Positions 31,203 through 64,000 of a stretch of 64,000 bases of DNA are shown here, piece after piece; within the stretch, counting starts at the first letter, position 1; each line of letters starts with the position of its first letter. Source of the stretch: Orbicella franksi (taxonomy: Eukaryota); contig OZ116706.1 in NCBI GenBank assembly GCA_964199315.1, positions 30,752,001 through 30,816,000 on the forward strand, given 5' to 3'. Below the pieces are notes generated by a model, which was given only the letters and a program-made list of their open reading frames with translations, was not told the origin of the DNA and ran no database searches. The translations under genes and the position numbers were made by a program.

Positions 31203-34200
31203 TCACTGTTCAAGCCGAACATTTCCTGGCATTCCAACTTGTCGTGGTCTTTTGAATTCTCTTCTGACGCTGGCCGGGATGAAACTGGGCAGAGGTGAGA
31301 GGGCAGGTGGCTCAGCGATGCTGTCCAATAACTTCCGTTTTGACTGCCTCGACGTCGTGCGTGCACCGGCAGTAGGCGTGACCGGATTATTAGGGTCCTC
31401 AATGTTGGAGACATTCAATTTGCGTGACAGCGCGTGCTCGTCACATGACGTTGATTGACCGAATCCAGCTAAGCGATGTTCTTGGCCGCTGAGAATTGGG
31501 CTGCCGTTTTCCTGGAAAAGAGACAGTATGGTGGAATAATAAATAATTATCTAAGATCGTGTTCTACTGGGAATATTTGAGTTGTTGCTTTCCCGTGTCA
31601 ATTAAGAAGGAAACCGTTTTCGGTTGGTTTTGGTAATCAACTTTTCAGCTGGGATCAAAACTTAGCATGGTTTTAACCGATAGCACCACATTACAAACTC
31701 AAAAGGTGACAAAGGACATTGTTCCACACTGCCAGACCTTATCCCGGTATGTTTGTACTTCCCCTCGATGGGCTGCTAGTACATCGCAGGGTTACCCCCA
31801 CTGGCCCAGCATCAGTGGTACCCATTTATACACTAGATTGGAAAGATGGACTGTTAGGGTAGAGTGACACATCAAAGAACATAGCAACAAGACCCCAACC
31901 TAAACAGAGTTCTTCACAATAAACAGACACACTTGAAACTTTCATGAAATCAAAGTTTTCACCTTTGGCATAAAGAGTTTTGTGAGCCTCGCAAGACGAA
32001 ATGATCAACGTTAGAAGAAAAAAAAAACTAAGTAAATTGTGAGGGGAAATCACATACGAAGACAACGCATCATAAACACAATCGTAGTTTTAACAAGGCT
32101 GCTACATACTCTGTCTGTGGATTCCACTGTAACCGTTACATCCATACACTTCTTTCTCAGAGCAGAATTGTAATTTTGCCGTCCGTACGTAGGTACAGTG
32201 TTGACTTTCACGTCCACTGAAGGAGACGCTCGATTCGGGCGAAGCATGGTAGTCAAAGTCTGCTGAATGTGACACATGAAAAGGTTCATATCCTGCAAAA
32301 AATAACAATAATAATATAAATATCAGATTTTATTAATTATGAGTGTCCATGTAGTACTATGCACCCTCCAAGATGTTTCGAACAAAGCAGTTACTTCGCC
32401 AACCATTCAGAATTTCAGGCAAAACAGGGAAAATTAGACAAATCACGACCAAATGTGCGCAAAGAGAGGCACAGTACATACCGGTATACTTTGGTGCAGA
32501 TTGTGCAAGGCAGTCCGTAGATGTGGTTCGCGAGGCTTTAGGGTCAGCGTTGACAGTTCAGTGAAGGTCAGGGAGGGGCACTGGATCCGGTCATCTGGTC
32601 GAACTGTTAAGTTGGTACAGCAAATGAAGCTACAAGGCTTGATCAGATCTTCTACAGCCACCGCCTGTGTTAAAGACGGCAAGAGTTAAACTTTTCACGA
32701 AAATTAGGAGGTTAAACCATAATACAGATGTAAATTGCTACAATAAAATAATAATAATAATAACAAAAAAAGAACACAGAAAACCTTCAATCCTCCCCAG
32801 AACTTTATCGCCACTAAGTTGCTGTCCTCGTCTGACAGATAAACGGTCTGCATGCTGGAACTAAAAACAAATGACAGTGTACAACAAAATAAAGCCTTCT
32901 TGTACAGAATGATACGACTTGACATGGCAATTTCTGGCTCTCTGAAATCTTCGTAAGGTTACAGAACCAACATAAGAGTCGAAGTGATTGAAATGGGACT
33001 AACTACGCGTAGTACCATCAGGGTGGAGAAGGGTGCAAATGAATTATCACCTAGACTTGATTTCACCAGAGGCACTGTTCATGCGGCTGCGTGTTGCATC
33101 GAGCCACCAAACAATACTTCAAATTCATTTCACCGTTTTATCAACTTTTGTAACCTTCTAAACTTCTAACGCCCCAAGTAAATTCCCAAACGGGTCAGGC
33201 AATCGATTTTTATCACATCCAAAAGCTGGAACCTTCTCTGACATTCAGGACCAATCAGATGACGAGTGTGGTTAACGACGGTGAAGCATTGGAAATGGAA
33301 TTGAATATGAACAAGCTTCCTAAAAGCGCCACGCTTAAGTTCAATCAAGCAACACTATTGTTAAAAAAGTATGGGTACCTGGGGCTGGAGAAGGTAGATA
33401 CAGGACTGCAAAATACCACCACTCCAACTACATCGACTTCTGAAAACGACTGCAACGAACCACATCGCAACTCATCAAAAGAACCGGCCTGAGAAAGGAG
33501 AACAGTTACATATCAACACACAGACTGTCATTCAAAACACTCAACTTCGTACTAAATGGACGATTCGATTGAGGCCTTGTATTGTTTTTACATGTTTTTG
33601 CATGGATCAATTGGGCTCTCGAAAAAAAGATGAGAAATCACAAAACAGGGGGGTTAAAAACGTGGGAATTTTTTTTATCATTCCAATTGACTCCTAGCTT
33701 CCATAAGTGAACACTGATTCAGAAAGTAAATAACCTACACTGAGATTTAGATTTCTGTAAAGAGGGACTTGCGCTTGAATGCCAGTTGTTTAGATTTAAG
33801 GTATCAAGTACCGTTAGTCCGTGTCGTTATTTATAAAGTTTACTCCGATAGCATACCTGTCGAGGCATGTAAACCACTCTTTTGACATCTGGGTCACTGG
33901 GCAGCTCTTCGTATCTTGTCGTTCGTGTTGCTGAAAGCTTTTGTTAGTAAAACGGAGAATAAGTGTTGGTCTAAAACAGCGCCAACTTTGTACGGGGCTC
34001 AGTGGAGTGAAAGCGACACATGGCACCAAACGATATTGAAACATGCAGCAAAATTACAGATTACTCATTAGATAGAACGATATATAATAAGACCCAGGCA
34101 ATCTCGTGTTTTTAATGTTCTGCTGTGCACTTGCCTGTAGTTCAGAGGCACCTGGTCGGTTCCTGAAGAAACAAAAATGAACACTTTATGAGAGCACGAT

Positions 34201-34291
34201 TGACAGACTAGGACGCACTTTACAAATAATGAATAACAAAGTGACGTTTTTCGTAATGTTGGAGAAATCCGCGCCAACAAACAAACAAAAT

Positions 34292-34322
<31 letters not shown>

Positions 34323-34443
34323 TCCAATTTAAGCAATTGGAAAGAAGAAGCCTGAAAAAAATCAGGGCTTCAACGGGATCCCGTTGAAGCCCTGATTTTT
34401 TTTTTTTTTTCCAGGCTTCTTCTTTCCAATTGCTTAAATTGGA

Positions 34444-34474
<31 letters not shown>

Positions 34475-37400
34475 ATCTACAACCGCAGTTCACATACGAA
34501 TTATTTCATATATACTTCACAAACAAACAAAATGATTTGTAACCTGACTCCAGCTGCTGTTAAATGATAAATTCTTAATCGGGATCCCTCGCTCAACAGA
34601 TGCATCACTTCCTCGCTTGGCCGCCAAATGCTTAACACTGCAGCTGAAACGACAAATGTCTATTTCAGAAATTATAGCCTCGCTGGCAGTGAACTGGTCA
34701 CAATAACTGGTTATTGTTAAAGTGCCACTATGATCAAATTCTCGATACCCAATTTTTTACATTTTCGTACACAATAGGTCTTTTCTAGATATCTTGCCAA
34801 ATTTCAATCTATTACGAACACTAGAACTCATGTTTTTTTGGACTTTTATTTCTGAGAATTTACGCCCGCCATTAATTTTCCTTGTTCCAAGTCTTGATTG
34901 AGAATTTTTAGAAAATGACGTCATTTTCTCAAAAATACCGCACGGGCTGAAATTATAATAACAATTAGCCGCAATTCGCATTAAGAATAACAAAAACTTT
35001 GGCTCATATATTCGTACAATTTTCCACATTAATTGTTATCATAATTTCAACCCGTGCGGTAGTTTTGAGAAGATGGCATCATTTTCTCAAATTCGCAACC
35101 AGGACTTGGAACAAGGAAAATTAATGGCGGCCGTAAATTCTCGGAAATAAAGGTCCAAAAACTGCGAGTTCTAATGTTCGTAATAGACTGAAATTTGCCA
35201 AGATATCTAGGAAAGACCTATTGTGTACGAAAATGTAAAAACATGGATATCGAGAATTTCATCAAAGTAGCACTTTAAACAGAGCGGTTTTCAATTGAGG
35301 GTAATAAAACAACATTTAAAGCAAGCAATCGGATATAGGCAATGCAACCAGCGCAAAGCGCGGAAAATCTGGTGTGTGCGATCACCATTGGTTTTGGCTC
35401 TACTTCTTGAGAAAGTGGTGGAATTTTCTTTATGTTATTGTTGTTATTTTTTTTAATCAATCTATAAGCGTACGTCAACAATGCAAATCCAAAACATTTT
35501 CGACATCCAAGCTCGAACAAAAATCGCACGTATGATCGCTGGTTCTGCTTTGCAAGTAGCATTTTCTATTTCATACAAATGGACACACGATGACGCTACA
35601 AATAATCAGTAATTTTGGGCTTTGTTAAACACAAGAGATACTCACTCTGCCTGGCTTGCCCTTTGCAAAGGTAATCCGCAATTCGAACTTTCAGTAGAGG
35701 TACCACGTTTCTTTGAAGCTGGCGCTGAGAAGACAAACAATTGGCATCAAACTACTGTGATACAACGTTGTACTTGTTACAGTTTTCTTTTAATCCTCGG
35801 TCTTGAATGACCACAAAATTTTCCAATAACGTCTAACTTCTCGCTATTAAAACACACCCATGCCAATAATCGCGCGTTCCGCAAAGGTGCTTTCCCATGA
35901 CTGACAAAAAAGTTTGTTGCTGTAATGATTTTGCGCTAGTCAAAGCTACGGTTAGACAAGAGGGAAGTCAAAATTCTACAATGTAAGGCAGTATGGTAAA
36001 ATACAAACAACAGTCATTTGAATTCACAGTTTGGTCTGCTCCCAATTTACGCACCAGTGTAGCTCAATTGTTAACGCAACCCTTGAAGCCCCGAAGATTT
36101 TTTCAAGAGTTTTTTATATCTTTTTTCATCATTGTTTAAATTGCAACACAATTACCAGGATCATGACTTCACCTCACTCTATATTCAGTTGATATCTGAT
36201 TCCATTGAATTGATACACATCACTTGCCACAAGTTTAACAACATTGATAATTGCTGAGTTACCTGTTCTTCCTCTTGTTCTTTCCAAACACGTTCAAACT
36301 TGCTCTGTAATTCCGCACATTTTCTCTCCTGTAACGAGCGCTGGTAATCTTCTAAGGCTCGCACTTGCCGCTCATTGAGACACTCCTGAAAGGGGAAAAA
36401 TGATTTTCAACGTGAGAGTAGTCTAGCGGTGGCTTTCAAGGAAATAGAGCCACTTAAAAACTACAAAAAAATGAAGTTTTACTCCCTCAGATCAACACTT
36501 CATATTTCCAGATGTTTGCGATTGTTTGTTGCTTTTCATAGACACATTTACAATGCACAACGTTCATGTCCTCAGCTTGTAATTCTTCTATCCGACGCCC
36601 GATAAAGTTAGACGTAATGTAAATCTCTAAAAAGAAACTGTTACTCAAACTGCAGGTAGCCTTTGACTATTATATGGCTGATTTATTTTTGAAATAAATC
36701 AGTGTCACAACAGTTCACAGTTGTCAACAAGGTGATTATAAGTAAAACAGAAACCATGACAGGAACACTAACTTTGACTGAGTCAGGATCGGAAGCCTGG
36801 GTAAGAGTTTCATAAATTTCCTTCCCGTCATGCAAGTCTTTCAAATCACGTGATGAAAACGAACGGCGTCGGAACCTCGCAGATCTTCTCTTTTCTGTAA
36901 TTAAACAAAAAAACAACAACAACAGTGTCCTTAAGCGTCTGTCGTAGAAACTGGAATTTTCTTTGGCTTGAAGGACTAATGATCTAATCTGTTTAACAGA
37001 GGTTGTTAAGTTCATTGTTGGACTTCCATAATCTACTTGCGAGCTTAAGTGACAGTATATCGAATTATCATATGGTTAGCTCCGTGAGCGGGAAAGATGA
37101 ATCAAATCCTGCGCTGTGATTGCCTACCCGAGTGGGCAAGATGGAGCTATCTTGCCCGCTCGGGACTACCCGCCATGTCCCGCAAGAAAAATTTTCCCGA
37201 AAGCCATATAATAAATCCTTTATTGACCAAGCTTGTTCGGCCAAGATGGCTGGATATTGGCCTCGTTCTTTTTTTGCGAGTTTATGGACCTCGACTCCGT
37301 CTCGGTCCATACACAGGCAAAAAAAGAACTTGCCCAATATCCAGCCATCTTGACCTCACACTTGGTCAATAACCCATATTTAGTATAAATTAATTAGCTG

Positions 37401-40400
37401 ACCGAGCGACATACCGACCGTCTGACCGCCCGCTCGGGCGAGCGCGCGACTCCATGTACCTATCCATAGACTGACGTCACAAAAAGAACAAAAGTTAAAT
37501 TTGACCGGAGTTGTATATGACTAACCTGGCAGTTGGCATTCTTTTTCAAACTCTTCCTGTATTTTCAGAAACAGCTTTTCCCTTCGCTTCTGTCGATCTG
37601 CTTCAAACTTTTTGGCTTCTCTTTCCTCAAGCCGAGAGTTGCGAAAAACATTGGTACCATCGGACATCTTTTCCATCCACTGTGAATATAAACAGACAAT
37701 ACGGATGTGAGTTACTGGCAGAAAAAACTCAACTATGGTGTTAATCAATTACATAACATAATGTTCTCTCTTACAAACCTTTGATTCGATGAAATACCAG
37801 CATTAGCTTTAACCATATCACTTGTCAGTATTCCTACCTGCACAGGATACTGCCTCAAAACGATGGCGTCCACACAGCCTGTGAATCCTCCATCACCAAA
37901 CAAAGAGGCCAGCGGTAATGCAAACGCACGCGCGTGGCTATGGAAACCAAGTTTCACATCCCATCGTGCACGCCGGGTGGAGTTGGCATGAAGCCGCAGC
38001 ATCAATGACGAGGGAGCCTGTTAGAAAACAGAATTACGAGTCACTTTGGGCGAAAACTGGTGAATGCCCAATGGGTGATTTCTGTCCACTAACAAAGCAC
38101 TCACGACTGCATCTTCTTGAATACTAAACGAATGGTTACTACGTTGTGTCATGGACAGGAGGGTACTGCCGAGAACAAGCAATGGTGAATATGCCCTACA
38201 AGAAGCAAGCATATGGCATGGGCCAATATCTCAGCACCTCTGTCAAAATTGTAAACATTTCATGGATGAAAAAATTCCACAAGGACCAACGGCATATTTT
38301 ACGACCATCCCTTCACCCTTGTCGCCTTGTGTACATATTCATTGAGCCGCAATTGTACCTCTAAAGGGGACACAGCCTGTTCAGACCCTATCAGTTCGGC
38401 TCCATACACGAACAACTTTTGCCCAACAACAATCTTTCTGTCATGTAACAGTCTTGTAAGTGGTCTGTCCAATGTGGCTCGAATACCATACCAGCCATCA
38501 GTAACCTCTATGACTGCACAACTCTGAAATTCAAAAACAAACGGAAACGTTTTCGATTTACTAACAGTCGTCAGAAAACGGAAAAATAACCAAAGAAGCC
38601 TGCTTTTAAATTTGTGGACTTCTTTCACAATCATTAACCCGAGAGCTAGTCTGCGTCAGGGACATGAAACGACAGGCGGAAATCTTTCGCATACGCAGGG
38701 CAACTGAGAGCTTCTTACTTTATAATGAGTCACTAAAGAGTTTGTTCTTGGACTTTAAGAGTACTGCTTCATTTCTTTAGAGTTGTGACATCATTGGTTT
38801 CTCGAAAACACTACTAGCGGTAAACTACCCCACTTTCCCCCCCTAATCACAGAATTTACATTAGCAAAGCATAGAAGTCCACAGGTAGTCACCTCTATTT
38901 TATTAACAGTGCCATGCCCGTCTTTTTCGCCGTCGTTGTCTGTCTGCTTTGCAGCAGTGTTGTCAACTTGATTTTCCGTTACTGTTACTCTGGAGACACA
39001 CAGCACCATCGCACGACTGGATGTATCATCCCGCTCCAGTATTTTCTTCAATGCAGACCTAAGAGATAAAGATAACGTCACTGAAAAACTGTTGGATTTT
39101 CTGTGAATACATTCAGATCTCAGTGGTACCTGTTGCTGTGATCGATTTCACGGTCATATCTGTACTTCAGTTGACACAAAACCCAGTCCGGAGTCAGGCA
39201 TCTAAAACACAAAAATATTACTGATGTAAGACGGCCTCGAAGGACACAACAAACGCTTGCAAATATATACTGGCAAAACCCGCACCATACTTACTAGCTC
39301 CATGGCGCGAAATAAATATCAAAGTTAAACCCACTGAAAAAGAGAATAACTTCAAAATTTGATTGGTGTCGTCCTAACTACAGTAGAAATTGTGTTTTTA
39401 CATCTTTTGAGAAGTAAAAACCTGAGCGTTTTCCCAATGGAGCTACAGACTAGTAAATATATTTAATTACAACTAAATTTTACGAAAGATTCCTCTTAAC
39501 GCAACAAACCACACTGATTTACGAAAAAGCGTTGGGAGCTTGGCATGTGTTACATACCAAAACGAACCACACCATAATCAAATTCCCCATTACAATGTTC
39601 AGAGTAATCAGTCCTAGCCGAACAATTATCTTCTTTTTTTTAATGCAAAAGTAAACTTACCTTCCAGCAAATTGACATGGAAATGCAACTTCCGTGGCGG
39701 CTAGTTTCCATACGAGCCATCTGTAATGATTTGCGATCCACTGTTCACTGATCAACTGACCGTCCACTCCAGGTGTGCTAAGAAACGCACTGACAAAAAC
39801 AAAACAAGATCTTCCTGAAAATTCTACCTTGCTTAAGATATAACATCACACATTTCCACACATGGAAAAAGGCACACACCTAATCCTAAGAGAATGCAAG
39901 ATATTTGTCACGAGTCTCCTAAAGCTCGTTTGTAGCCCTTTAGCACAGAGGCCAGCTTTCCAAGATAAACCCGCAACAACGTGACGAGGAAACATCAACC
40001 AGCACTGTTTCATGATGCAGTACAGTGAACTTGGTTGATTGCCGTGAATCACCACTCAGACTACAAGATATCATCTTTTCACACCTCTCAATTAATTTTG
40101 ACATCGAACTTACGTATTTATATTATTTCTTTCATTTACCTTTGTATTTCTTCCAGGCCCACGCAGCCATCAATCCCAGCATGCAACACTCCGCCGTCCT
40201 CCATTCTAATACCACCCCCGCTAGTCAACACAGATTCACTGAAATACTTCCTTCCGATGAACCGGAATGATCCCGCATTAGAGGAAGAAATAGAGATCAC
40301 CTCTGGAGACACACCCAGTTCAATCAGCTGAAATAAAAGTAAAATTACAGCAGGATCAGTCACAAAGACTATTTTAATAAAGATGAGCTGTTTCGAGTGA

Positions 40401-43400
40401 CTTGTAAACAGGAATACTCCGCTATTTGGCCTCCTCATTTATGAAGAGAAGTCACGGTCATTTTAGGGAGGATAAGACTAGCAGCTTACCTCCGCTGTGG
40501 TGAATTGCCCTGGCAGTGTGCCATGTCCAACAATATCTTTAAGCTTTATTCTTCCATTGTGGAGACGCAAATGAGAAAGGAAACCAGGCTGCGGTTTCAC
40601 TTTGCCGTCGGTCTGAAATGGAAGTGAAATTGTATTATATTTTCACTGAGAATGAACAGAATTAGAAACATGGTATCTGTCAACAACTCTCTACAGATGG
40701 CAGAACTTGTACGATTCAGTGGAAGTCAGAGGTTTCCTTTTGCTATTTACGTCTGAAATAAGGAAGTGTGATACTTTATCTATCCATTATTATTTGGATA
40801 AAACGAAAATCAACAAGCTAACCTGAGAAACAGTTCCATGATGACCGTTCTTCTCATCCATTGTGCTGTTAGACGCTGATATTCTGGGTTTCTTTGAAGA
40901 CGGTTCCACGACATCTGAACCTTGAGCCTCCGCGGAACCACTGACCGGTATACTAGAGCTACTACAACGCGCAAGAGGCGAAACCTCCCTACTGGCTTCC
41001 TGCTTTCTGTAGGGCGTGATAAACTGCGGCCGAGGACCAGACACCCTTCGGTTTGCGTTGGAATTCAAAGGGGTACTAGTCTTTGGTGTGGGGGCAGCTT
41101 TGGACTTGAAGCAGCCTGGCGTCATAGCTCGAAGTGACCTTCTGACAACGCAAAAGTTTATTTGTTTATTCAGCAAAACTATTATAAAACTAAATAAGCA
41201 AAACATTCTTTTAAGTTAAGGTGATTCCTTAGTATTGCATCGCGCATCCCTACTGTGCACGATTTTCGCGTCATTAGCGGGCGCACATGAGCGCTTGCGC
41301 GTACAAAACGTTAGAGATTTCCCTCAAACTAAGCTCGATAGCGAAATAAATGCTCTTTTTCTCTTAAAAGAGCACGGTGACCCCTACTTTTTATTTCATA
41401 ATTTCAATGAGAACAATATCCTCAATAAGTGAGAAAAAAATAGCAGAAATCTATGGCTACCTTTTAGGCAAATGAAAGAAATATTACAGAGGGAGACCTA
41501 ACGGGCCCAACAGCGCATGTCCAAATTATGCAGGGTATCTGAAGACATTTTTTTCTGGGACGTAGATGAATAAACAATCAAAGGAAGTCGAACTCTGTGT
41601 GGTATAACCCGCTACATTAAAAAATAATCGAGCTTATTTGTTGCGCGCGGAGATTACCAAAAGACATCTAAATAACCGTATTTGTCAGCATTGTGGCGTG
41701 AAAACAAGCACGATGACCACCTCTTTTCACTACGTTTTTAATATCTCCTTATCCTGTAACAACAGCATACCAAGTTTCAACGGAAATCTATAGCGGGGTC
41801 TTTTACTAGGGAATCACCTCAAGCGTCTTCTGGGGTCAACTAGCTCAGCAGACCAGTCTTGATCCTGGTTCTCATCTTTTGAATCGAATAGGAGAGCTAC
41901 TTTCCCAGATGGGCTGCCAGTCAAACAAAAGTGCGACTTACAAGTAGAGGCTTATTCACCTGGATCGAGAGGCGCTCTGTGAGAGCAAAGTATGAAGCAC
42001 AAAAACGCGGCAAAATGATGCAAATGGATCTTTTGATTACATCAACGGACACTGTTTTTAACTTCCCCAAAGACGCAAGCTTTCAAAAAAACGAGTAAAA
42101 CCCTTGTAATACAGACAGAATTAAATGGTGGTACCTTGGTGAATACGAGCTCTCCACAGCCGTCAGGCGTGCCCGGAGAGGAGCATGGAACCGTGCTCGC
42201 CGATCATGCAACACACCTAATAAGGAAAAGAAACCAGAAATGAGAAAACGTCACAAAGACACAAGACAAGAGAAAGCTGTATCAGACAGATATATCTGAC
42301 ACTCACCAAAATAGCGAGACCATTTTTGGAGAGTAACACCGAGAAACTTAAGTACAGAACCTCTCACGAGATTAATAGTGCTTTTCAACACCCCGAGTTG
42401 GACGATTTTAAACATTTCAAGGACAATTTTAGTGAGAAAGGCCAACATAATAAATGCTGAGGAAAGTGATTTCAAACGTGTTGATAATAAACGAAATGTA
42501 AATTATGAGGCTTACCCGGGAATCTATATGTACATGTATAGTGAGATACAACTGATGTAGATGAAGTTTACCTGATGGAGTGGTTGTACAAGGCTTCATC
42601 CCATCACGTGTCTCTCTGTGACTTGAGTTGAACATGTCTTCACTACATCGCAACTAAAAGAATTGAAAGAATAATGACACAAAAGCATCAAATTTCATAT
42701 CAGATCGATATGACAAACACGAACTAGTCTAGGATAAGTTAATATTAGGGAGTACATTATATTTACAGTTACTAAATAGGCTACTTACTGGTGTCGAGCA
42801 ACGTCTTGGAAAGTCATGGTCAGAAGCCCGTGCAGGCCCTTTTGATTCGTGAAAAAAAAGAAGACAGTTACCAAATCTGCACTAAATACATGTACTAAGG
42901 TAGGGGCTGCTAAGATGCACCATTCATGAAGTACACTATAGGATCGTTAATTTTTATCAGATAGTTACCTTTCTCCCTTCCTGTTATAAATGAACCTTCT
43001 GGCCTGTTGAAGGAGCTGCATCCAACAGCAATCCCATCGTGCAAGTTACCTGAGACATCTGAGGTGTCCATAACTGATTCATAAGCCAGGAGTGCTTCAG
43101 AACTCTCTAGAACCTCGCGGGATACCGCTTCATCGTGTTCAACAGAGCAGCTTCTACCTGGTGTGGACATAGTCCTACCATGCACCTCTGTAGCAACCAC
43201 ATGTTCACGTACAGAAGCTTCTGCATCTTTTGTTTTGGAGTCGATAAATGCACTGTCCGCCTCCTGTAAAAATGCTTTAGCTTTAGAGAGTGCCTGTTCT
43301 GATACCGAAACTCTTTGACCTCCAGCGGTGAAAAAACCGCCAAACGTCCCGCCGTAATTTCCAGTCTCTTGTTCAATGATGCTCAATTCTTCCCTTGCCT

Positions 43401-46400
43401 TTCTTGACGCATCCAGAGATGTAGCTACAGTCTCCGTGTTAGTTGCCCGCAGTTCCCTGTCAATGTCAGCCATTTTCTTTTTCGCTTTTGCGAGCGCTGA
43501 TTCCGAAATTTCCACCATTTTACCACCTGCTGTTTGAAAACCAGAAAATTCTGAAAAACTGGTTGAACTTGGTTTGGTTTTAGAAAAACCTGTGGCAGAT
43601 GCGCTGCTGTGTTTGTTTTCCTGGAGGGATCTGTCAATCTCTTGCATAATGGCAGCTCCTCTTTCCATTGATTCTTTAGACAGTTCAACGCTCTGTCCAC
43701 TTGCTGTTTGGAAACCAGAAAAACTAGTTAAAGATACACCGTTGTCCCATTTATCCTGAAGGGATCTGTCAATCTGTTGCATTATTGTCGCTCCTTTTTC
43801 CATTAATTCCTTAGACAGTGCAACGCTTTGTCCACTAGCTGTTTGGAAACCAGTAAAACTAGTTGCAGACACACTGTTGTCCCATTTATCCTGAAGGGAT
43901 CTGTCAATCTGCTGCATTATGGCAGCTCCTTTTTTCATTGATTCTTTCGACACTTTCACGCTCTGTCCACTAGCAGTTTGGAAACCAGTAAAACTAGTCG
44001 CACTACGTGGGTGCTCTACACTGTTTTCCTGGACGGATCTGTCAATCTGCTGCGTTATGGCAGCTCCTTTCATCATTGATTCTTTAGACAGTTTCACGCT
44101 CTGTCCACTAGCGGTTTGGAAGCCAGAAAAACTACTTGTACTACGTGTGTGTTCTGCACTATTTTCCTGGAGGGATCTGTCAATCTGTTGCATTATGGCA
44201 GCTCCTTTTATCATTGATTCTTTCGACAATTTTACGCTCTGTCCACTAGCAGTCTGAAAACCAGAAAAACTAGTTGCATTATGTGAGTGCTCTGCACTGT
44301 TTTCCTGAAGAGATCTGTCAATCTGTTGCATTATCGCAGCTCCTTTTTCCAAAGATTCTCTGCACAGTTTAACGTTCTGTCCACCAGCAGTTTGGAAACC
44401 AGAAAAAACAGATGCGCTGGGTGAGTTAGATATGCTGGTGCCCTTGTTCTGTTCCAGGGATTTGTCAATCATTTGCATCATGGCCGCCCCTTTTTCTAAT
44501 ACTTCTTTGGACGGGGCTGCGCTTTTACCTGCGGCAGTTTGAAAACCAGAAAAACTTATCAGGTTGGTCGTGTTTGTTCCAGGTTTGTCCTCGCTTGGCA
44601 TTACCTGCGCTTCTGTCGGTAAAGAGTCCTCGGCATCTTTGGAAACACAGTGGTGCTTTTCATTGGCCAAGTGGCAATCAATAGTTTCTTGCAGCCCTTC
44701 TGAGGGATCCGCCGTGATTCGTCTCATTATGTCGCTGCCTCGTCTCAAGGCTTCCTCGGATAAAGTTACCTTCTTTCCCCCGGCTGTCTGAAAACCAGAA
44801 AACGTGGCAAAACTAGCTTCAGAAAGCTCTCCACTTTCACTATTTGCGGTTTTAAACCAACATGAACTTGCGGAATGAGTCCATGACTTGTTCTCGTCTT
44901 CAGAAACAAAATCGTGATCAATGTTATTCACTTTACCTTCCAAAGTGTTCAAAACGTCGTTACTCTCGTCGATCATTTTATCTCCCGTCTGTCTCCTGGA
45001 GTCTTTTGTAATGCGCAACGAACGCGGTGAAACGTCAACATCTCCAGCTGGAACTGCGTGGAAACTGTTACGACTTTCCACATTCTTGTGTCGTGGCTTA
45101 TAAGCTCCCTCGAGGGCCAACTCCCGGTCGATTTTATTCCAAGTACTTTTTGCCTTGCTCAGAGCTGCCTCCGATACAGGGACGGGATTGCCACTTGCAG
45201 TCTTAAACAATACACAAGGTTTTTCTGGATTTGGAGTTGTACTTCTACAATATTCGGTCGTAATGTTCTCCTGGTATTGTGAGGATCTTTCGGGATCTGA
45301 TCGCCCGCGCGTCAGGTCAGAGAACTCTTCTGTGTTTGTGAGAATTCCTTCATGATGTTCCTCGATTCCTTCGCTTTCCTCGCAAATGGTGGCCAGTGAA
45401 TCTCGCCTTTGTCGTTTACAGTCATTCAACAAATCCTCAAGCAAAGAGTCATTTACGATTTCACTCTGTTTACATTTCAACTCATTCACTGATTGCTCAG
45501 CGTTTTGTAAAGCCATCTCCTCAATTTCCTCTTTTATTGCCGAAGTATTTTTCCCAGATGCATCCATATTTAGCTCGTCTGGCTGTGGCATATCTTTCAG
45601 TTGTGATGCCCCGTAACGTGGTCCTTCAGAGTCCCCCTCTCTCAGCTCATTTCCTGAGGCTCTTTGCTTGTTACTAATGCTGTAAGATGGTTCTTTCTCT
45701 CTTGCAACCTTCACAATCTGGCCACTATCGCCAACATCCAACTCAGCGTCTATTTCGCTCAAAGTTTTTCTCGCTTGTTTCATTGCTGATTCAGATATGT
45801 GAACTTGTTTCCCACTTGCCGTAGAAAAACCACAAAATCCCGTCAACACAGATGACCGTTGTTTCTCAAAGCGGGATGTATTATCTGTTTTTGTATTAAA
45901 TTTGTGAGCCGCCCCTTGTTCCTTAACCTCATTAACGTTCCCTTCTATTTCGGGCGAATATCTTTTAATTACTGGGCCAAATATCGGCTGGACAGCTGTA
46001 GAAATTCCATCAAGGTTTTCTTGTGCCATTTCTGGTTGTGCTATTTCTGTTTTCACTCCTTTAGTTAAGTCAGCCCCTTCACGGAAAATATCTTCATCAA
46101 CCACCTCGTCCGCTGTTGGCCTTTGCTCCTGTGAAGTTAAGCTTACCGTAGGTAGATCCAACTCCTCCAACAAAGCGTGAGGACAATTGAGAGCTTTGTC
46201 CGATATCTCAATTTTCGTTCCTCCCGCACTGTGAAATCCCGTCTTCCATTCAGAACGCAAGGCCGGCGCGTCCTTTTGAAAGTTAACACAGGAAACTGGG
46301 CTTTCAATCACGTCGCTTTCCCCTTGGTGACTTCTGTTTTTCAAGGTTTTTTCATCCTTGTGCACTACAGCACTTTGTATCTTCATGTCCTCCGCTTTAC

Positions 46401-49400
46401 ACTTTATAGATGCATCGATTTCTTGTGTAATGTTGTCAGTTCTTTTCCGCAAATCTTCAATACTCCCCGAAGACAAGACTTGCTGCTGTACTGTCGATGT
46501 TGCGATATAACCATTCAAAGAGTTTAAAGATGGGGGAGAACAAATACATTCCACAGGAAACTGACTGAGTGCATCCATATCAAAAAGGACGTCGTCTTTT
46601 GGGATGTGGTTCACTGTGGACAACAACGTATTTACATCTCTCTTACTTTCACAGAACGTTCTCATCTCGTCCGACTTAAGCCTCTTGGACATTGGCAACT
46701 CACCCTCTCCACCCTTGGGACTACTCGTGTCAATCGTAGCGCAGTGGTCAATATTCCCTTTTCCTTCTTCAGCGGTAGATTTCTTTTCCTTGACAACTCG
46801 GGAAACGTCAGCAGTTGTAGTATTATTATTTATACGCTTGCCTGTATCTTGTTTTGACACTTGACTAGCAGTCGGATATGAAAATCGTTTCGTTCCAACT
46901 GATCGCCGTAATCCGGGAACTTTACAAACCGACCTCCTCCTAACGAGGTTGCCGTGATCATCCGCTGACCGAGTGGTGGACTCGGCAGAGTTTGAGCTTG
47001 TCTTTTTATTGGCTTCTTCAGAAAGGTTCGTTTTGTTTGGTGGGGTTCGAATGCCTTGTTGAAGGTCTTCAGTTGGTTGACTAGAGGTGTTTAGTATCAC
47101 CTGATCAACGCGCGATGACTGGGCATTCAAACTGACGGAAAGCGACGAACCTGCAAGAAAAACAAGGGTCGATAATTTTCTCGTACTTTTTGCTAGGTTA
47201 AAGCAGCTCAGTCACGGTATTTTGTGTCATTTTGGCCCAGCACAAAATAAGCTTCTGGGGTTCTTTTCAAAATTTCCGACGAGGACCCCCGTCCCTTTTA
47301 TATGGGAGTCACCCCCCCGGGGACGATAGCCTCTCCCTCCCCCCTCCAAAGGAACAAAATGCGTGACGACACATGAGTAGGAGGCTAGGGAGACGATGAC
47401 CCTTCCGCAGGACATGTTTTTATAAAAAAAAGCACCCACATTGACAGATTGCAATCCCGTCACATCTTGTAAACTGATATCTAAAATGATTTGTGAATGA
47501 AAATTTGCCTCTTTGCGAACAAGTCCTCTTGCTTGGCACATGTTACTAGCCTGCAAACTTTTGGTAAAACGTCAAGTTATAAACACCAACTTGGTTGGTG
47601 AGAACGTTATAGCTAACTTCACTTTTTTAATTCTACTTCCTATTCATTTTTGAGCTGGCAGGAGTATCAGCTTCGGCTATCTCATGGGATTCCCTGGTCA
47701 GCGTCTGTGAAACTCAACTGGGTTCAGTCGGACGCACGCACATGAAGGCAGTTTCTGGTCGCTTGGTGAACAACTACACGCTAAGCAATGCTCCAGTGTA
47801 TCGGGAAGGATATCCTTTGTACCGGTATTACATCGCCTTTCGAAAGGACAAAGCTGCGAGGATCTCCTATGAGGAAGAAAGACTACTGGATGAACGAAGA
47901 AACTTGTGTCTGGAAGACGCACCAGAGAAGAAAACGCTGCGTGCTTGTTTAGAATTCGCAAAACGACGTTTTCGGCGATTTTCCGAAGATTTCCGACCAC
48001 TTTCCGAAGATTTCCGAAGATACTTCAAAATTTGTCCGAAGGCCAGACGAACGTTTTCAAACATTTTACAAAGACTTCCGAAGATAACCGAAGATGTTGT
48101 GATAATACACCAACGAATTTAAATGCTGTTAAAGAGACAAAAATATTATCAAAAATGATATCACACATGTGGGATATCGCTTTTAACAATTTGCTACCAC
48201 TCGATCTACCTCTAGCTTTTATATAATAAAATCATAACATCGACGAACGCAGTTCACGTACACAGCGACGCGGTGTAAACTTCGTTTGAATGATTAGCTC
48301 TTGGAGTTTAGTTTCCGGGTTTAGAGGTTGATATGTTTGGAGAAGAACAAACAGATACTTAAACAACTTCAGTACAAAAGTTTATTATAGAAACCACAGA
48401 GGCACCCGTTTTCTTCTATACCTAAAACGCATGTTTAAGGTTTTCAATGACCATTTTTGACAAATATTAAACATGTTTCTGTTTGCTACTTAAACGCGGC
48501 CAATCAGGGTTTAATGGTAAAATTTCCTTTTCTTGTATTGGCTCCATCCGGTCTACTGCGTATTTAATATTCTAAACACGCCTGATCATAAAGTCGGGAG
48601 CCAGGCCAGATGGTTACTGAGGTTATGGTTTAAAACACAGCTCGTTTGTGCAAGGAACAGAACCACCAGGAGAAAGATGGGGCCTTTAAAGTCGTTCTTG
48701 ATTCTGTTTTTAGCAGTGCTGTCGTTAACGCTGTGTGTTGAAAGTCGCAGTTACAGTATTTTACCGGAAAAAGGTAAGACTTGAAAGGTTTTTAGCAGAT
48801 CTCACAAAACATCGCGTGACCAATGTCTGAGCAGAATTTTGAATTTGTTAACAAATGGTGGGCTTAGTTGAAGTTCCTAAGCATAAAGCGATTCCTTTTT
48901 AAAACACCTTCTCTGTAAAATTCTTATATTCGGATTCATATCGGCAATATTGAATGTTACAATAAATTTGGAAATTAAACAACCGAAAGCTATCGGTTTT
49001 ATGAAACTGCCGAGGAGACAATGATAGCCTGAATCGAACTCAGAAAATCTCAAAATGCATTTAATGCTTTAAACCTTCAAATTTTGAACTAGTGAAAGGG
49101 TAACTAGTGAAAACAGTACTAAGAAAATGAATTGTTCAAATTTTTAGGTGCCGAAAGTCGACTGTCTTAGAATATTCGACACGATAATGCTGCTTAATAT
49201 ACTAAACATAGACTATTTAAGATGCACCAACTGATTAAGCCACAATTACTGCAATTAACGTACACGCAACCAAGAACACTTTGTTAATTCGTCTGACTTA
49301 AAAAAAAAGTTAACCGGCAAGAAATTTATCAAAATACGTTAAGAAATATAAGAACGGGGTGAATAAAATTTCAATGGTTATTCTTGCGGTATCACTGAAA

Positions 49401-52400
49401 TACTAGTTGAAAGACACGCCTTTTGTTTGTGAACTTAAGTTTGCACTTTCGCGTCGTCTTCGAAGCCTTCAAAATTTGAATTTGAATGGTTTTCATTATC
49501 AGACTGGAACACTTTCTCATTGAGCGACATCTGCATGTGTTAAATTAAAATGATTTTCAAGGCCCGCTTATCACAAGTGAGGGGCCCTATGCACCTGTTT
49601 GTATTGTTGTCAGATAAACAAAGGACTGCTCTCCTTAAGTCTGGCAGGGTTTCTGAGAACACCTATTGACACATATCGTGAAAACATACTTCTCTTAGAA
49701 CAAAGAAATTATACAGGCGATGAAATCGCCTATTGGATATTTCCAATTCGACATAAATGTAATTCTAACAATTCTGGCGGAGTTCAGGACTATTTTAACA
49801 AAGAGAAATTTACTCTCGCACAGTAAAACAGTGTATTCTCCGATATATAATTAATGTTGTAGAACAAATTAAAGCCAAAGTAGAGGAAATTCCAACTGAA
49901 GCCGGTTTTCGAAATAGAAAAATACCAACTAGGCAACAACAAACCAAACAGGCATAAGGAAGGTTAATGTTTGGATAAAATAAGGCCCCGTTCACACGTA
50001 TCCGGATATTTTTGAATCCGCAACTTTTTCTTTCCGGATACGGCCTCCGTCCACACGCATCCGGCGAATTAGGCAGCGAATCCAGATATTTTTGAATCCG
50101 CTCTCCAGACTGGAAAAAAATAAATCCGCAACGAATCCGATAACGTGTGGACGGTGAATCCGAATAGTTTCAAATCCGATGACGTAGCAAAATCGCGTCC
50201 AGTCTCTTACCGAACAATAAACCAATATGGCGGCACAACGTGTAGGCCTAGTTTCTCTTGAGTGAATCCGGATGCCATCGGATGCGTGTGGACAGGCGAA
50301 TTCGATTTGAATACGCTACGTGTGGACGGGGAAATTTTTGAATCCGGAAAGAAAAAGTTGCGGATTCAAGAATATCCGGACACGTGTGGACAGGGCCTAA
50401 AATGCATATTCAGGCTAATGTATTCCAGATCCATTCGCAAAGTGGCACGTTTAAATAATTGCTCAGTGCCTTCTGTTTGCGCCAATGTATATATTTTTTA
50501 AACCCTAGCTCGCAAGAGGCATCGTGGTTTAAATTTTTGCGCGGAACAATTTTCGCATAAGAGTTCTCCGCAAAAAGAAAAGAAACAAACGTTCCAGCCA
50601 AATCTAAAGAAATTCAGTAAAATTTTCCTGTGCAACTAATTTGCTTTGACAACACTGGGGTGTAGAAGATACGTTCTGGTTAATTTGAATAAAAACAGTC
50701 TTTAGGTTTATACGTTACACTGCAGGTGTTTTAATTCGGAGACAATGGGAGTTGAAAACTGACACAATCACTGAATAAAACGTCTAAGCATTCCTGTCTC
50801 AATTTATATCATGCCTACGAAAAGAGTTAAAATGCTAGTGTTGCAGTAGGAATTGAACTTTCAGTTTCCCCTAAATGGAAATATGACAGAAGAAAAAAAG
50901 ACTCCAAGATTTACATGTGAAACATAATCGTGTCTATGACAAATTCTCGATTGGTTCTCCGCGCCTAATTCTGTTACCACTAATATTATTTAATCAATTG
51001 ATTTAAAAAACCACGCTAGTATCTCATAATGTTGCTTATGACTGGTTTTTACCAGCATGTTTGTATATATACAACAAAGGCAATGACACAAAGGAGATGA
51101 GAGCGGGCTACATAAATTTACTGATTTAATGAAAATAAAATGGTGTGTTTTATAAAGGTTACTCCTCAACCAGTAAGCAGTGAGCACCGTGCATCTGTTG
51201 TTCCTATAAGAACTGAACATTCAGTTTGCTTTATTTGTTTCTTTTTTATTCAACTAGACGATGACACTGAGGAGTTGGGAGTGGATTACCTCGAGTTACG
51301 TAGGTTAAAGAAATTGTAATTTTGTGTCCCTAATTAAGGAAAGTTGTTCATGATTGGTTTTATATGTTGATCTTTGGGTTTCTTCTCTTTTTAACAAAGG
51401 CGATGAAACAGGGGACTTGCGAGCAGATTACAATAATTTGCGTACGCTAGAGAGAATAATTATAGCTTTGTGTTAAGGAAAGTTGTTCATGATTGGTTTT
51501 ACATGTTGATCTTTGGGTTTCTCCTCTTTTTAACAAAGGCGATGATACAGAGGACTTGGGAGCAGATCACAATAATTTGCGTACGTTAAAGAGAATATAA
51601 CTTTGTGTTAAGGAAAATTGTTCAAGATTGGTTTTCTATGTTCATCTTTGGGTTTCTTCTCTTTTTAACAAAGGCGATGAAACAGAGGACTTGGGAGCGG
51701 ATTACAATAGTCTGCGTAAGTTAAAGAGAATATAAAAGAATTGGTTCATGCTTTTAGCGTACATCGAGTTATGGATGCACTTGGAAAGTTTGAAGAGCAC
51801 CCAGGAAGCTAGAGTTGCTCTCGGCTATCGCCTCGAGCAACTCTTACGCTTCTTTCGTGCTCTCCAAACGTCCCGCATGCATCCATAACTCGATATACGC
51901 ACGCTAAGCATGAACAAGGAAAATGGTTCATGATTGGTTTTATATGTTGATCTTTGGGTTTCTTCTCTTTTTAACAAAGGCGATGACGCAGAAGACTTGG
52001 GAGCGGATTACAATAATTTGCGTAAGTTCAAGAGAATATAGCTTTGTCTTAAGAAACGTAGCAAATGGCTAGTTTTGTGTATTACTAACATGTTTCTTCT
52101 TTTCACCACAAAGGCGATGACACAGAGGACTTAGGAGCAGACTTCATTAATTTAGGTTCGTCAAAGAGAATATGACTTAACTAATTTGACCTACTAAGTA
52201 ACTAAGTTGTACATGATTGGTTTTATATGTTGGTCACTGATTTCTTCTCTTTTTAACAAAGACGATTACACGGAGGACTTGGGAGCGGATTACTACAACT
52301 TGGGTAAGTTAAAGAGAATATAATCTTGTGTTAAGGAAAGATTTTCATGACTGGTTTTGTATATTGGTCAGTGTTCGTTATTGATGTTCTTCTTTTTTTC

Positions 52401-55400
52401 AACAAAGGCGATGACACAGAGAAAGTGGGAGCGGACTACATTAATTTACGTAAGTTAGAGAAATAATTTTCTGTTTCAGAAAGGTTGAACTAAGATGGTT
52501 ACGGTTGTTAACAGACAATTTGTAGCCATCATCACCTGCTGGATTTCGTCTTTAGATCTCATCCACATGAACAGAAAATTGGAAGAGAAACTTCGTTCTG
52601 GCTTGATAACGGCTTTAAGCTGTTTTCAACGTATTTCACAAAGTTTATCAGGGGTCTGAGGTCTTGTGGACACGAAATGAGCTTTGTTTTATCACTTGAA
52701 AATTTTCATGTAAACTGAATCAAAACTGAAACTGTAGGAGTTTCCCATATGTTCTCCCTAATTAACAAATGGTAAACGCCATAACGTGTACTATTGAGTT
52801 ATGGATGCACGCGGGAGGTTGCTAAGCACGAAAGAAGCGTAAGAGTCGCACGAGGCGATCGCCTCGTGCGACTCTAGCTTCTTGAGTGCTTAGCAAACCT
52901 CCCAAGTGCATCCATAACTCAATAGTACACGCTACGGCGTTTACCATTTGTTTTATAACATAACATTGAAACATTGGAACAACAGAAGTCCTTTTATTGA
53001 GCTACATCCCAAAAAATGTAGTCTTACATGACAAGAGAAAACAAGCGCGCGAAAATTCATTCATGAAAACCGACTGCACACCAGTAACTCGATAAAGTTT
53101 CATCTTCACACAACTGTGAAGACAGTTTCGCATTTCTGGGAGAAGGACGTCGGCCATTACTTTGGAAACAATGTCTGTCAAAAGATTTGCTTTGTAAACA
53201 TTAGCACACACGTCAGCAGCGTACACCCATGGGCAAATAGTAGACGCTAAATTAACCAATCAGAGCGCGCGCTTTGCTTTAGTTATGTTATAATTATTCT
53301 ATTTGTACACGTGACAGCCACGTGTGGCAAGTCGTCAGCAGCAGGAAGCCGCGTGATTGGTGGCACGGACGCTGCTCCAGGTGAATGGCCCTGGCAAGCG
53401 AAGCTTAGAACCAAAGACTCAGGATTCATCTGTGGCGGCTCGCTCATCACACCAACATGGGTAATGACTGCTGCTCACTGCGTCTCAAGTTCTGATGATC
53501 CCAGCGTGTACAGCGTGACGATGGGGGACCTCAACAGAGAGAAACCCGAGGGAACCGAGCAGGAGTTCAGCGTCAAAAGAGTGGTAGTACACCCTAAGTA
53601 CAATTCGCCGATTGCTATCAATAACGACATAGCTTTGCTGCAGTTGACACGTTCAGCAAGCAAGAATTCCTTTGTGAACACGGTGTGTTTGCCGGACGAG
53701 TCGGAGGTCGTGCCAGTTGGAACCAAATGTTACATTTCAGGTAAAAATGAACTTGTTATTGTCTCTGTCAATATACACTTGAGTAAAGAACTGCAGGCTG
53801 CACTTCACAAGCGAGCGTAGAACTGCCTCATTTTAACGACTAAGAATAAGAGAACTTGCAGAGACTGAGAGTTTCTTGTATTAAAAAAAATTGCAGCTAA
53901 ATAACTGAGAGAAAAATGCAGTGGAACAAAAATCCCTTATTCGATAGTTTTAAATATAACACTTTTAACTGACAGCTTATTCTTTTGAGAAACTTACTTA
54001 ACCCATTGTTTCATCGACGAAGTCTGTGTATCAGTTACGGTAAGCTCTCTAATAATTTTTAGTGATTATTGGTCAGATAGAATCTCATATAGACCAGTTG
54101 TCGAACAAAGAAGTCGTCGGACAAAATTCATTCGGTTCTTCTTCGATTTTGACAGTTGCACGGTAGGGAACCGGTTTGAAAAACGCTTAAACCTCCTTTA
54201 GATCCTGGAAGTTTCGAGCCGATATTTTTAACCATTAAATTGCTGTTAACTGAGAATTCGACGAAATGGCATAGAATTTATCAGGTTCACGAGCATTAGG
54301 TGGATGTCTGCGTTCTTCACTAAACGAGTTCCAGTCGAACAGTTGTAATGCGAACACAGTCAAAGTAGGACTGCTCGATCCGGAGTCGAGTGAACTAACC
54401 ATGAGGACACCGTGCCTCCACAACACAATCAAATAAAACGGAACTTATTCTGTGTGAATGTTGTTTTGTTATTACAGGTTGGGGACAGATGACTCATCCC
54501 GACGATGCAGCCATTAAACTCCAACAAGCTCCCATGCCGGTCGTGTCCAATCGTGTCTGCCAAGCCAAGCACATGAAATCACCTATCAGCAGTGCTGGGG
54601 AGACCGCCGTGACTTCAGCTATGCTGTGTGCAGGAGACGCCGGCAAAACCAAGATAAGCGGCTGCTTTGGTGACAGTGGAGGACCTTTTGTTTGCCGAAA
54701 CACAGCTGGCCAGTGGGTACAGCAGGGGATCGTGAGCTGGGGTGATACGGTCTGCTCTTCAAAGAGTCACTTCACTGTGTTTGCTCGAGTGAGTGTCTTT
54801 CGACAATGGATCGAGGATACAATTAGCGAGTAAATCGAAGGTGTTAAAAAATCGCTTGCAAAGAAACTAGCGATAAATTAAATTAAACAAAATCATGAAA
54901 ATACTTTTACTTAAACTAACAACAATAAAGCGATGAATCTGCCGATTTAGTGTTTGTGCTTTTTTGTTGTTGCTGTTGTTTTTCGTGTGAGTAATACAGA
55001 CCATTCAAGACGTCCATAAGTTTGATCGCTGTTCCAAGCAAGACTGGGCTAATAACCGAACAGAACACAATTTGTGGGAAATTAATTAGAGATGAAAGAT
55101 TATAGCCCGCTCGCTCGACAGGTTTACAGTTCAGATTGCTACACAACGAATTTTGTCAACGAATCACATTTGACAACCACAAAAACGGTTTACGCGCCTC
55201 CCAAACATTTAAGATCCCGGATTACATGAAGTCAAGTAATAGAACAAAGTCAACACAATTGACAAAAATCACTTCATCGGGTTTCAGCGGTTTTATTCTT
55301 TTTTTTGGGGGGGGGGGGGGTTATTTTTTTGGTTTAGTCAGCCCTGCTTGGTTGAAAAGAAACACCAGCATATTGCCGTGATTATGTAAAACACGCAGCC

Positions 55401-63092: not shown

Positions 63093-63262
63093 CATGATTT
63101 CTGCTAAAATATCTGGTGTTGTTTTTCCTCTTATGAACCAGTCACTTCCACTTCTGTACATGGAGGGAGCCATTGGAGTGGCAAGAACCTGAGTAGAGCT
63201 TGGGCTTGCTTCAGCTGCCTTGTATGAAGTGTCTCCATGACAGGTAGGCTGCGACTCTAAGC
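63093..63262 (-). CDS. Candidate upstream BRCA2 exon
   Basis: Open frame (STQVLATPMAP, resembling human NQLASTP) with a strong donor ATG|gtaag. The acceptor is weak and the linking exon(s) to 60637 were not resolved. Confidence 0.4.
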
Positions 63263-64000
63263 CTTCACACAGACAACAAATCAAATTTATTGTCAGTTAA
63301 GTGAGGATGGTGATGAACCCTGCCGAATTCTAAGGTGGCTAATGACAGTTGACAACATTATTATGTCATTTAGTATTTCAGGGATATACATGTAGCTAAA
63401 AAAAATGAGCTGCCAGACTCAATCTCATTGACGAGCCCAGCTGACATTAAATCTTTTGCACATTACATGTAAAAGTTACATGTACCCTAAGTCTTTGTCT
63501 TCTAATGAGATTTCAGCCACCGAAAAGCTCTCTTAAACTTTCAGTGAGTGGAATTAGCCAGCAGGAGCTAGAAGCTACATGTAAATGCACATCCCTATTA
63601 CATTTTAAAATATATATATATTTTTTTTTAACAACAGGACCTACATTGATAACAGACACATACAAAATAGCTCATATATAGCGGCTAGCCCATATTAATC
63701 AATATATTTTCAATTATTATTGTTAAAACCCCTTGCTGTTAACATTACACTGCAGGTCACAGAGCAGTTCAAAAACCCTTACCCTATCAGGCTGGGTACA
63801 TGGCCTTCAAGATTTATTTGACCCATACATATAGATTACATCACAATAAATTATACATGTATATACATTGTACAGTCAGACTTTTTCTGTAATCCAGTCT
63901 GTTGATTTTCTTTTCTAAATTTTTGATGGCTTTGTCCACCTTCATCATTGATTATTAAAATCAATGGTAAGTAAGCATGGGGGAGCAGTTTCCTCTTGTT

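Follow-up and report, generated by a model that had tools for sequence, protein, structure and literature searches.

A stony-coral BRCA2 gene with thirteen BRC repeats and an old six-unit tandem array in Orbicella franksi

The BRCA2 locus and its repeats

The stretch of Orbicella franksi DNA analysed here (the window, 64,000 nucleotides; contig OZ116706.1 of assembly GCA_964199315.1, positions 30,752,001 to 30,816,000) carries a BRCA2 gene on its minus strand. A large exon at the centre of this gene holds 13 complete BRC repeats, six of which form a head-to-tail array of old duplicates that is shared with other stony corals. The gene takes up at least 32 kb of the window, as judged by tblastn with coral BRCA2 proteins, and is laid out as follows.

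31206..63275, minus strand: BRCA2 gene, minimum span (tblastn with Stylophora, Oculina, Porites, Acropora and Montipora BRCA2 proteins)
63275-63069, 60472-60344 and 56473-55703, minus strand: N-terminal exons (tblastn with the coral proteins)
42969..47150, minus strand: large BRC exon, about 1394 codons (open frame and splice signals; putative boundaries)
32482..40438, minus strand: DNA-binding-domain exons overall (direct Pfam matches, all above cut-offs)
40142-40438 and 39660-39845, minus strand: BRCA-2_helical exons (Pfam)
38872-39060, 38305-38538 and 37838-38020, minus strand: OB1 exons (Pfam)
37527-37682, minus strand: Tower exon (Pfam)
34543-34653, minus strand: OB2 exon (Pfam)
32482-32685, minus strand: OB3 exon (Pfam)
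ending at about 31206, minus strand: C-terminal exon (tblastn with the coral proteins)

The helical, OB1, Tower, OB2 and OB3 exons, which match the Pfam models PF09169, PF09103, PF09121, PF21318 and PF09104, all lie 3′ of the BRC exon on the same strand, and the gene is therefore a canonical BRCA2. The BRC exon itself matches PF00634 in 12 stretches (223 bits, E=1.1e-67). The initial annotation of this DNA, made from the letters alone, had named the gene BRCA2, and both the repeat and the DNA-binding-domain matches bear this out. A single BRCA2 copy is present in the 497-Mb assembly, where the window begins 30.75 Mb into contig C9, and protein matches support orthology with the named coral BRCA2 proteins. 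The gene neighbourhood is also kept: the trypsin-like open reading frames found 5′ of the BRC exon here are also present there, on the strand opposite BRCA2, in the related coral contigs L001 and L002, both of which have BRCA2 DNA-binding-domain exons downstream of the BRC exon. The best explanation of the locus, held as a whole with high confidence, begins with its identity as the single-copy canonical BRCA2 of a stony coral, the stretch studied being the large central exon.

The open reading frame through this exon runs over 42910..47130 on the minus strand (1406 amino acids). A putative acceptor, CCTTGTTTTTCTTGCAG followed by G, lies at 47151/47150, and a putative donor, AG followed by GTAACT, at 42969/42968; the exact ends of the exon are most likely 47150 and 42969. 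The match of a contig from polyA RNA ends at 42974 and is followed by 22 unmatched letters, and RNA depth is zero over 42700-42856, the intron bin next to the donor.

By motif search, the exon contains 13 complete BRC repeats plus a half repeat. Complete cores (F-x-T/S-A-x-G/S) start at amino acids 299, 435, 642, 780, 863, 912, 958, 1004, 1050, 1095, 1140, 1198 and 1266, and a truncated core, WFKTANS, at amino acid 759; F-x-(T/S)-A is present in all 14. These are precisely the 13 repeats and truncated WFKTANS listed by the initial annotation, whose span of 43255-46236 agrees with the 43240-46248 computed here. PF00634 was also run on individual units, nine of the 13 complete ones, of which eight reached its 20.3-bit cut-off. 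The same model gives 12 stretches over the whole exon, and a hidden Markov model (HMM) built from the units recovers 13 repeats. Seven of the repeats (BRC1-5, 12 and 13) are dispersed and unique in sequence.

46141..46248, minus strand: BRC1 (FHSAGG), dispersed unique repeat; PF00634 20.7 bits; one-to-one orthologs in relatives
45733..45840, minus strand: BRC2 (FSTASG); PF00634 33.8 bits; clade with Oculina, Stylophora and Porites orthologs, support 98/90
45112..45219, minus strand: BRC3 (FKTASG); PF00634 36 bits; orthologs in relatives
44821..44859, minus strand: half repeat WFKTANS, 21 amino acids before BRC4 (motif search)
44698..44805, minus strand: BRC4 (FQTAGG); PF00634 38.4 bits; clade with Acropora, Montipora and Oculina orthologs, support 100/98
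44410..44556, minus strand: BRC5 (FQTAAG), 49-amino-acid unit at the 5′ edge of the array; PF00634 13.2 bits, below cut-off; orthologs in relatives
43552..44409, minus strand: six-unit tandem array (Tandem Repeats Finder, unit table, substitution rates, subtype clades)
44272-44409, 44134-44271 and 43996-44133, minus strand: array units with ENS.EH tails, 46 amino acids (138 nucleotides) each
43861-43995 and 43726-43860, minus strand: array units with DKWDN tails, 45 amino acids (135 nucleotides) each
43552-43725, minus strand: array end unit with ENKHSS tail, 58 amino acids
43444..43551, minus strand: BRC12 (FQTAGG), unique repeat following the array; PF00634 38.2 bits; orthologs in Porites, Stylophora, Oculina, Acropora and Montipora
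43240..43347, minus strand: BRC13 (FFTAGG), last repeat; PF00634 33.7 bits; ortholog clade support 100/95

The half repeat is not matched by PF00634, and a counterpart, GFKTAIG or GFETAIG, is retained in three relatives (P0001-P0003). BRC5 has 64-71% nucleotide identity with the array units and is degenerate beyond its FxxA core, reading KSAAPSKE (44449-44556) where relatives have KSVTLSKE; it may be a weakened repeat peculiar to this species.

Tandem Repeats Finder reports one array, at 43614-44407, with a period of 138, 5.8 copies, 85% matches and a score of 969, and its units resemble each other more than the dispersed repeats do. The six-unit array at 138/135-nucleotide spacing, and the two tail subtypes taken to record its duplications, had been described in the initial annotation and are found as stated, with three ENS.EH and two DKWDN units. 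The homogeneity also ascribed to the array is merely relative, DNA identity between units being 78-89% over 39 codons. Each unit differs from the other five, in contrast to relatives, in which identical units occur in runs.

Age and sharing of the array among stony corals

The array had been read as a recent, lineage-specific expansion that would raise the capacity to load RAD51 or DMC1 and could matter in a long-lived animal exposed to ultraviolet light. Substitution rates give it a different age. Synonymous divergence (dS) between the six units averages 0.48 (range 0.25-0.81; mean nonsynonymous divergence, dN, 0.13; Nei-Gojobori, 15 pairs), which is about twice the dS of 0.18-0.30 that separates this coral, over orthologous parts of the exon, from the two nearest available relatives compared at the DNA level. 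The duplicates must therefore be older than the split from these corals, with which protein identity over the BRC exon is only about 75%. It weighs against this dating that each dS rests on 39 codons per unit, and so on few sites per pair, yet the 15 pairs agree. Gene conversion could only lower the apparent age of the units and not raise it. The array units are thus old duplicates, in an array that is small in this genome.

The array is also widely shared. A word-indexed protein search returned about 50 coral-like open reading frames of the BRC exon, and a run of BRC units at 45-49-amino-acid spacing was present in every scleractinian examined. Total counts, obtained with the HMM built from the units, are 11-23 in the ten nearest relatives (ENA assemblies with 65-75% identity and the same upstream trypsin-like open reading frames), 14 in Stylophora pistillata (P0024), 15 in Porites lobata (P0240), 12 in Acropora palmata (P0239), 10-13 in Montipora capricornis (P0238) and 10+3 in Oculina patagonica, where the gene is split over two models (P0028 and P0050); a Xenopus control gave 8, as expected. 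The 13 repeats of the window fall in the lower-to-middle part of the coral range of 10-23.

In trees of single units, BRC1-5, 12 and 13 each form a group with one ortholog per species and strong support, and certain of these clades unite Acropora, Montipora and Porites with Stylophora and Oculina. The array units fall into one clade, in which interior units cluster partly by species. When the full-length array units of six genomes are placed in a DNA tree, the ENS/EHS subtype (support 89/98), the KWDN subtype (100/97) and the end unit (80/76) each form a multi-species group. Relatives carry the same kinds of tail (DKWDN, DKLDN, EKWDN and ENKH/ENKD...TGF.KTKPSS), so the two subtypes must predate the sampled species. 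The second part of the explanation given above, which shares its high confidence, is that the array and the unique repeats both go back to the common ancestor of the sampled stony corals.

The two lines of evidence leave little room for a recent expansion. In its favour stand the existence of the array itself, the closeness of its units to one another, the pairing of units WIN_09 and WIN_10 in one tree (97/82), and the precedent of Trypanosoma brucei, where tandem BRC expansions have a known importance for recombination (PMC2408642). However, dS within the array exceeds that to relatives, identical units are absent, both subtypes and the end unit are common to other coral genomes, and the count is unexceptional among corals. 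A recent expansion is accordingly rejected on within-array dS and shared subtypes, and the array is not lineage-specific; the full reading, with its gain in loading capacity, is regarded as highly improbable. The initial annotation had also considered that related species might all carry the same count: the array is indeed ancestral, but the counts differ.

Some points limit the case for an ancestral array. The arrays of relatives come from ENA assemblies, one of them short-read at 2.9x. The dating reaches back to the sampled stony corals: when the Stylophora DNA-binding domain was used as query, the matches were five coral proteins, then amphioxus and then vertebrates (mostly birds), with no anemone, octocoral or hydrozoan. 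Literature searches on BRC repeats in corals and cnidarians (Nematostella, Hydra, Acropora) found no relevant paper.

The proposed link to longevity and ultraviolet exposure was set against counts in other animals. A profile search of 1.84 billion representative proteins gave 1294 matches; among the best 150 of these, 63 of the 112 newly fetched representatives have at least 13 BRC units by the same HMM approach, and 49 of the 63 contain a regular tandem run of five or more. Counts reach 24-26 in the leafhopper Macrosteles quadrilineatus, 24 in the urchin Lytechinus pictus, 22 in the amphioxus Branchiostoma belcheri, 21 in both the scallop Argopecten irradians and the cockroach Diploptera punctata, 20 in the damselfly Ischnura elegans, 16-17 in the stick insect Dryococelus australis, 16 in the urchin Diadema setosum and 14 in the hemichordate Ptychodera flava. 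The annelid Owenia fusiformis has 36-40 units at an exact 33-amino-acid period. Since such high counts include short-lived insects, and counts of 13-40 extend to an annelid, urchins, a scallop and amphioxus, the link finds no support. Thirteen BRC repeats are typical for stony corals and common in invertebrates, and do not represent a species-specific gain.

The Owenia protein (P0121, 4819 amino acids) has the highest BRC count met, with more than 30 units at its exact period. Array periods elsewhere are 33-38 amino acids in the leafhopper, stick insect and urchin, and the damselfly has a 116-amino-acid double unit.

Turnover and copy number

Although the array is old, its make-up changes between related corals. 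In P0002 the KWDN subtype is missing and there are eight ENS units; P0001 carries twelve KWDN units, of which nine fall into two sets of identical DNA copies; and P0006 and P0010 have only three to five array units each. Recent expansions thus belong to relatives and not to the window, and separate lineages have amplified separate subtypes. Units at the edges of the array are orthologous across species, while interior units turn over. The array changes by gain and loss of in-frame units of 135 or 138 nucleotides, for which unequal crossing-over or replication slippage would be the simplest mechanism; stable edges with a shifting interior are as expected for unequal crossing-over.

Length forms may also coexist within a species. 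P0001 (23 repeats) and P0003 (19 repeats) lie on two contigs of one ENA assembly, ERZ25067879, at 58x and 66x (loci L002 10001-15430 and L004 2001-6899). Their flanks are 97.1-99.7% identical in DNA, but their arrays, of 16 and 12 units, differ by four units and in subtype order; most simply, they are two haplotypes or two genotypes. P0009 and P0010 have 12 and 11 repeats with a unique spacer that is 98% identical, the P0010 contig being the short-read one at 2.9x. It is put forward, tentatively, that the stony-coral BRC array is a coding minisatellite, with variants of different length and subtype composition segregating within species. In that case, how many RAD51 monomers one BRCA2 molecule can carry would vary heritably in these long-lived clonal animals, and O. 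franksi may have alleles besides the assembled six-unit one.

Sequencing reads bear on how many units this species has. In three DNA runs, which come from three studies and have two organism labels, contigs match the exon without indels or joints and each shows 0-15 differences. Contigs of the polyA RNA run, which has a third organism label, cover nearly all of the exon and span four of the five junctions between units. For units 7-10 alone, 20 runs from 8 studies (four organism labels) contain 0.51-0.84 of the sampled words. With these words so widely found and the same units in related corals, assembly artefact was rejected as the entire explanation of the array.

A narrower doubt is that the array is real but that six is not the copy number of the species, the assembly showing one haplotype of a variable locus or a set of collapsed units. 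Several observations weigh on that side. Among the contigs listed, those from DNA break off at 43770 and start again at 44083 or 44194, leaving the interior 43770-44083 unbridged. Summed contig depth in three bins over 43799-44269 is 2.2, 3.5 and 1.8 times that of the flanks, with equal ratios in all three DNA runs, even though the assembled array has only one exactly repeated stretch, of 36 nucleotides, and almost no repeated 31-mers in this interval. The fraction of sequence words found in the runs is about 0.1 lower for the array than for a 2.2-kb stretch, and the related assembly with forms of 16 and 12 array units offers a precedent. The raised depth could reflect a different haplotype with extra units resembling units 8 and 9, but it could also be overlap inflation by short allelic contigs. 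Moreover, joints or indels are reported in none of the runs, for most junctions between units there is a contig that spans them, and units with differences of 11-22%, in a window deep within its contig, should be easy to assemble with long reads. Thus the true or allelic copy number could differ from six; this is judged unlikely, though far from negligible.

Two contig forms cover 42922-43095, 44447-44533 and 45579-45746 in all three DNA runs (two labels, three studies). The second form differs from the window at 14 of 174 nucleotides in the first interval and 9 of 168 in the third, and by four listed single-nucleotide polymorphisms in the second; it represents either deeply diverged alleles common to the samples or an unassembled second copy.

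Other features lie close to the BRC exon. A trypsin-like protease gene (51258-52449) sits within the BRCA2 intron 47150-55703, between the exon ending at 55703 and the BRC exon, and in the related corals (L001 and L002) trypsin-family open reading frames lie on the strand opposite BRCA2, 5-6.5 kb upstream of the BRC exon. The intron just 5′ of the BRC exon contains a very high-copy repeat (47096-47400), with a summed contig depth of about 58,000-64,000 as against about 130 on the exon (run X1) and many loose contig ends at 47198-47321. This repeat is probably a transposable element.

Selection, predicted function and known arrays

The array units are kept under purifying selection. Between units dN/dS is about 0.28 (dS 0.48), and between species it is 0.24-0.39 for BRC codons as compared with 0.47-0.74 for linkers. 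Amino acid identity between distant corals is 55-78% in the array and 35-50% in the unique flanks, and the FxTASG core is invariant or nearly so across all array units.

A profile built from 43 coral units gives a match to human BRC4 complexed with RAD51 (1N0W chain B, E=8e-8), and to other solved BRC peptides, including one from Leishmania. RAD51 binding is predicted from this match together with purifying selection, and each BRC unit would bind one RAD51 monomer. The FxxA core would contact RAD51 by mimicking the RAD51 oligomerisation motif, to which a conserved second hydrophobic patch, GAAIMQQID, would add further contact. One BRCA2 molecule could then bring many RAD51 monomers to single-stranded DNA.

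It might instead be that some or all array units have lost RAD51 binding and act as spacers, or bind only a different partner, for example DMC1. The second half of the unit is near-constant among coral array units, but its IMQQID module is unlike the human LFDE motif. This difference, the restriction of the match with solved BRC peptides to the FxxA half of the unit, and the degeneracy of BRC5 past its core count against binding by the array. On the other side stand the near-invariant core in all units, a dN/dS of about 0.28 between units despite the depth of their divergence, and the better conservation of the array than of its flanks. Loss of binding is considered improbable, and binding of RAD51 by the array units remains the favoured prediction.

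With respect to human BRCA2 (BRC1-8), the coral gene belongs to the same family and has the same domain order, with BRC repeats in one large exon followed by the helical, OB1, Tower/OB2 and OB3 domains, and human BRC4 (1N0W) aligns with the coral FxTASG core. The coral gene differs in having 13 repeats rather than 8, six of them head to tail at a 45-46-amino-acid period, and IMQQID in place of LFDE as second module, whereas the human repeats are dispersed and mutually dissimilar. The annotated BRCA2 proteins of Stylophora, Porites, Acropora, Montipora and Oculina follow the plan seen here, unique BRC repeats flanking a 45-49-amino-acid array, with total counts that vary from 10 to 15.

A high BRC count is thus the ordinary state in stony corals and many invertebrates and does not indicate a special adaptation; it is vertebrate BRCA2, with 6-8 dispersed repeats, that lies at the low end. 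Related corals provide a natural series, in which seven constant unique repeats surround a central array of roughly 4 to 16 units. The reason for many RAD51-binding sites in BRCA2 has been left open by recent work in mouse (PMC12803100) and by that in T. brucei, and the coral series could help to ask why so many are retained. What remains of interest is the fast turnover of the array in related corals and its possible length alleles.

Tandem BRC arrays have been described in other systems. In T. brucei BRCA2, the tandem units are virtually identical in DNA (less than one change for each unit), and related kinetoplastids lack the expansion (Hartley and McCulloch 2008, PMC2408642). The coral gene resembles it in having a tandem, in-frame BRC array with a diverged last repeat after it, and a copy number that shifts between close relatives. 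However, the units in the window are only 78-89% identical, with a mean dS of 0.48, and the array and its subtypes occur in all stony corals examined; the T. brucei-like state of near-identical units is seen in the relative P0001 and not in the window. In Drosophila yakuba, unequal crossing-over both expands and contracts the BRC array of dmbrca2, and alleles of different length segregate (Bennett et al. 2010, PMC2882388), albeit on a much smaller scale (3 versus 5 repeats) and in a BRCA2 that, as in Drosophila generally, lacks the canonical DNA-binding domain. This kind of array is already known from T. brucei and Drosophila, and the coral case adds to it.

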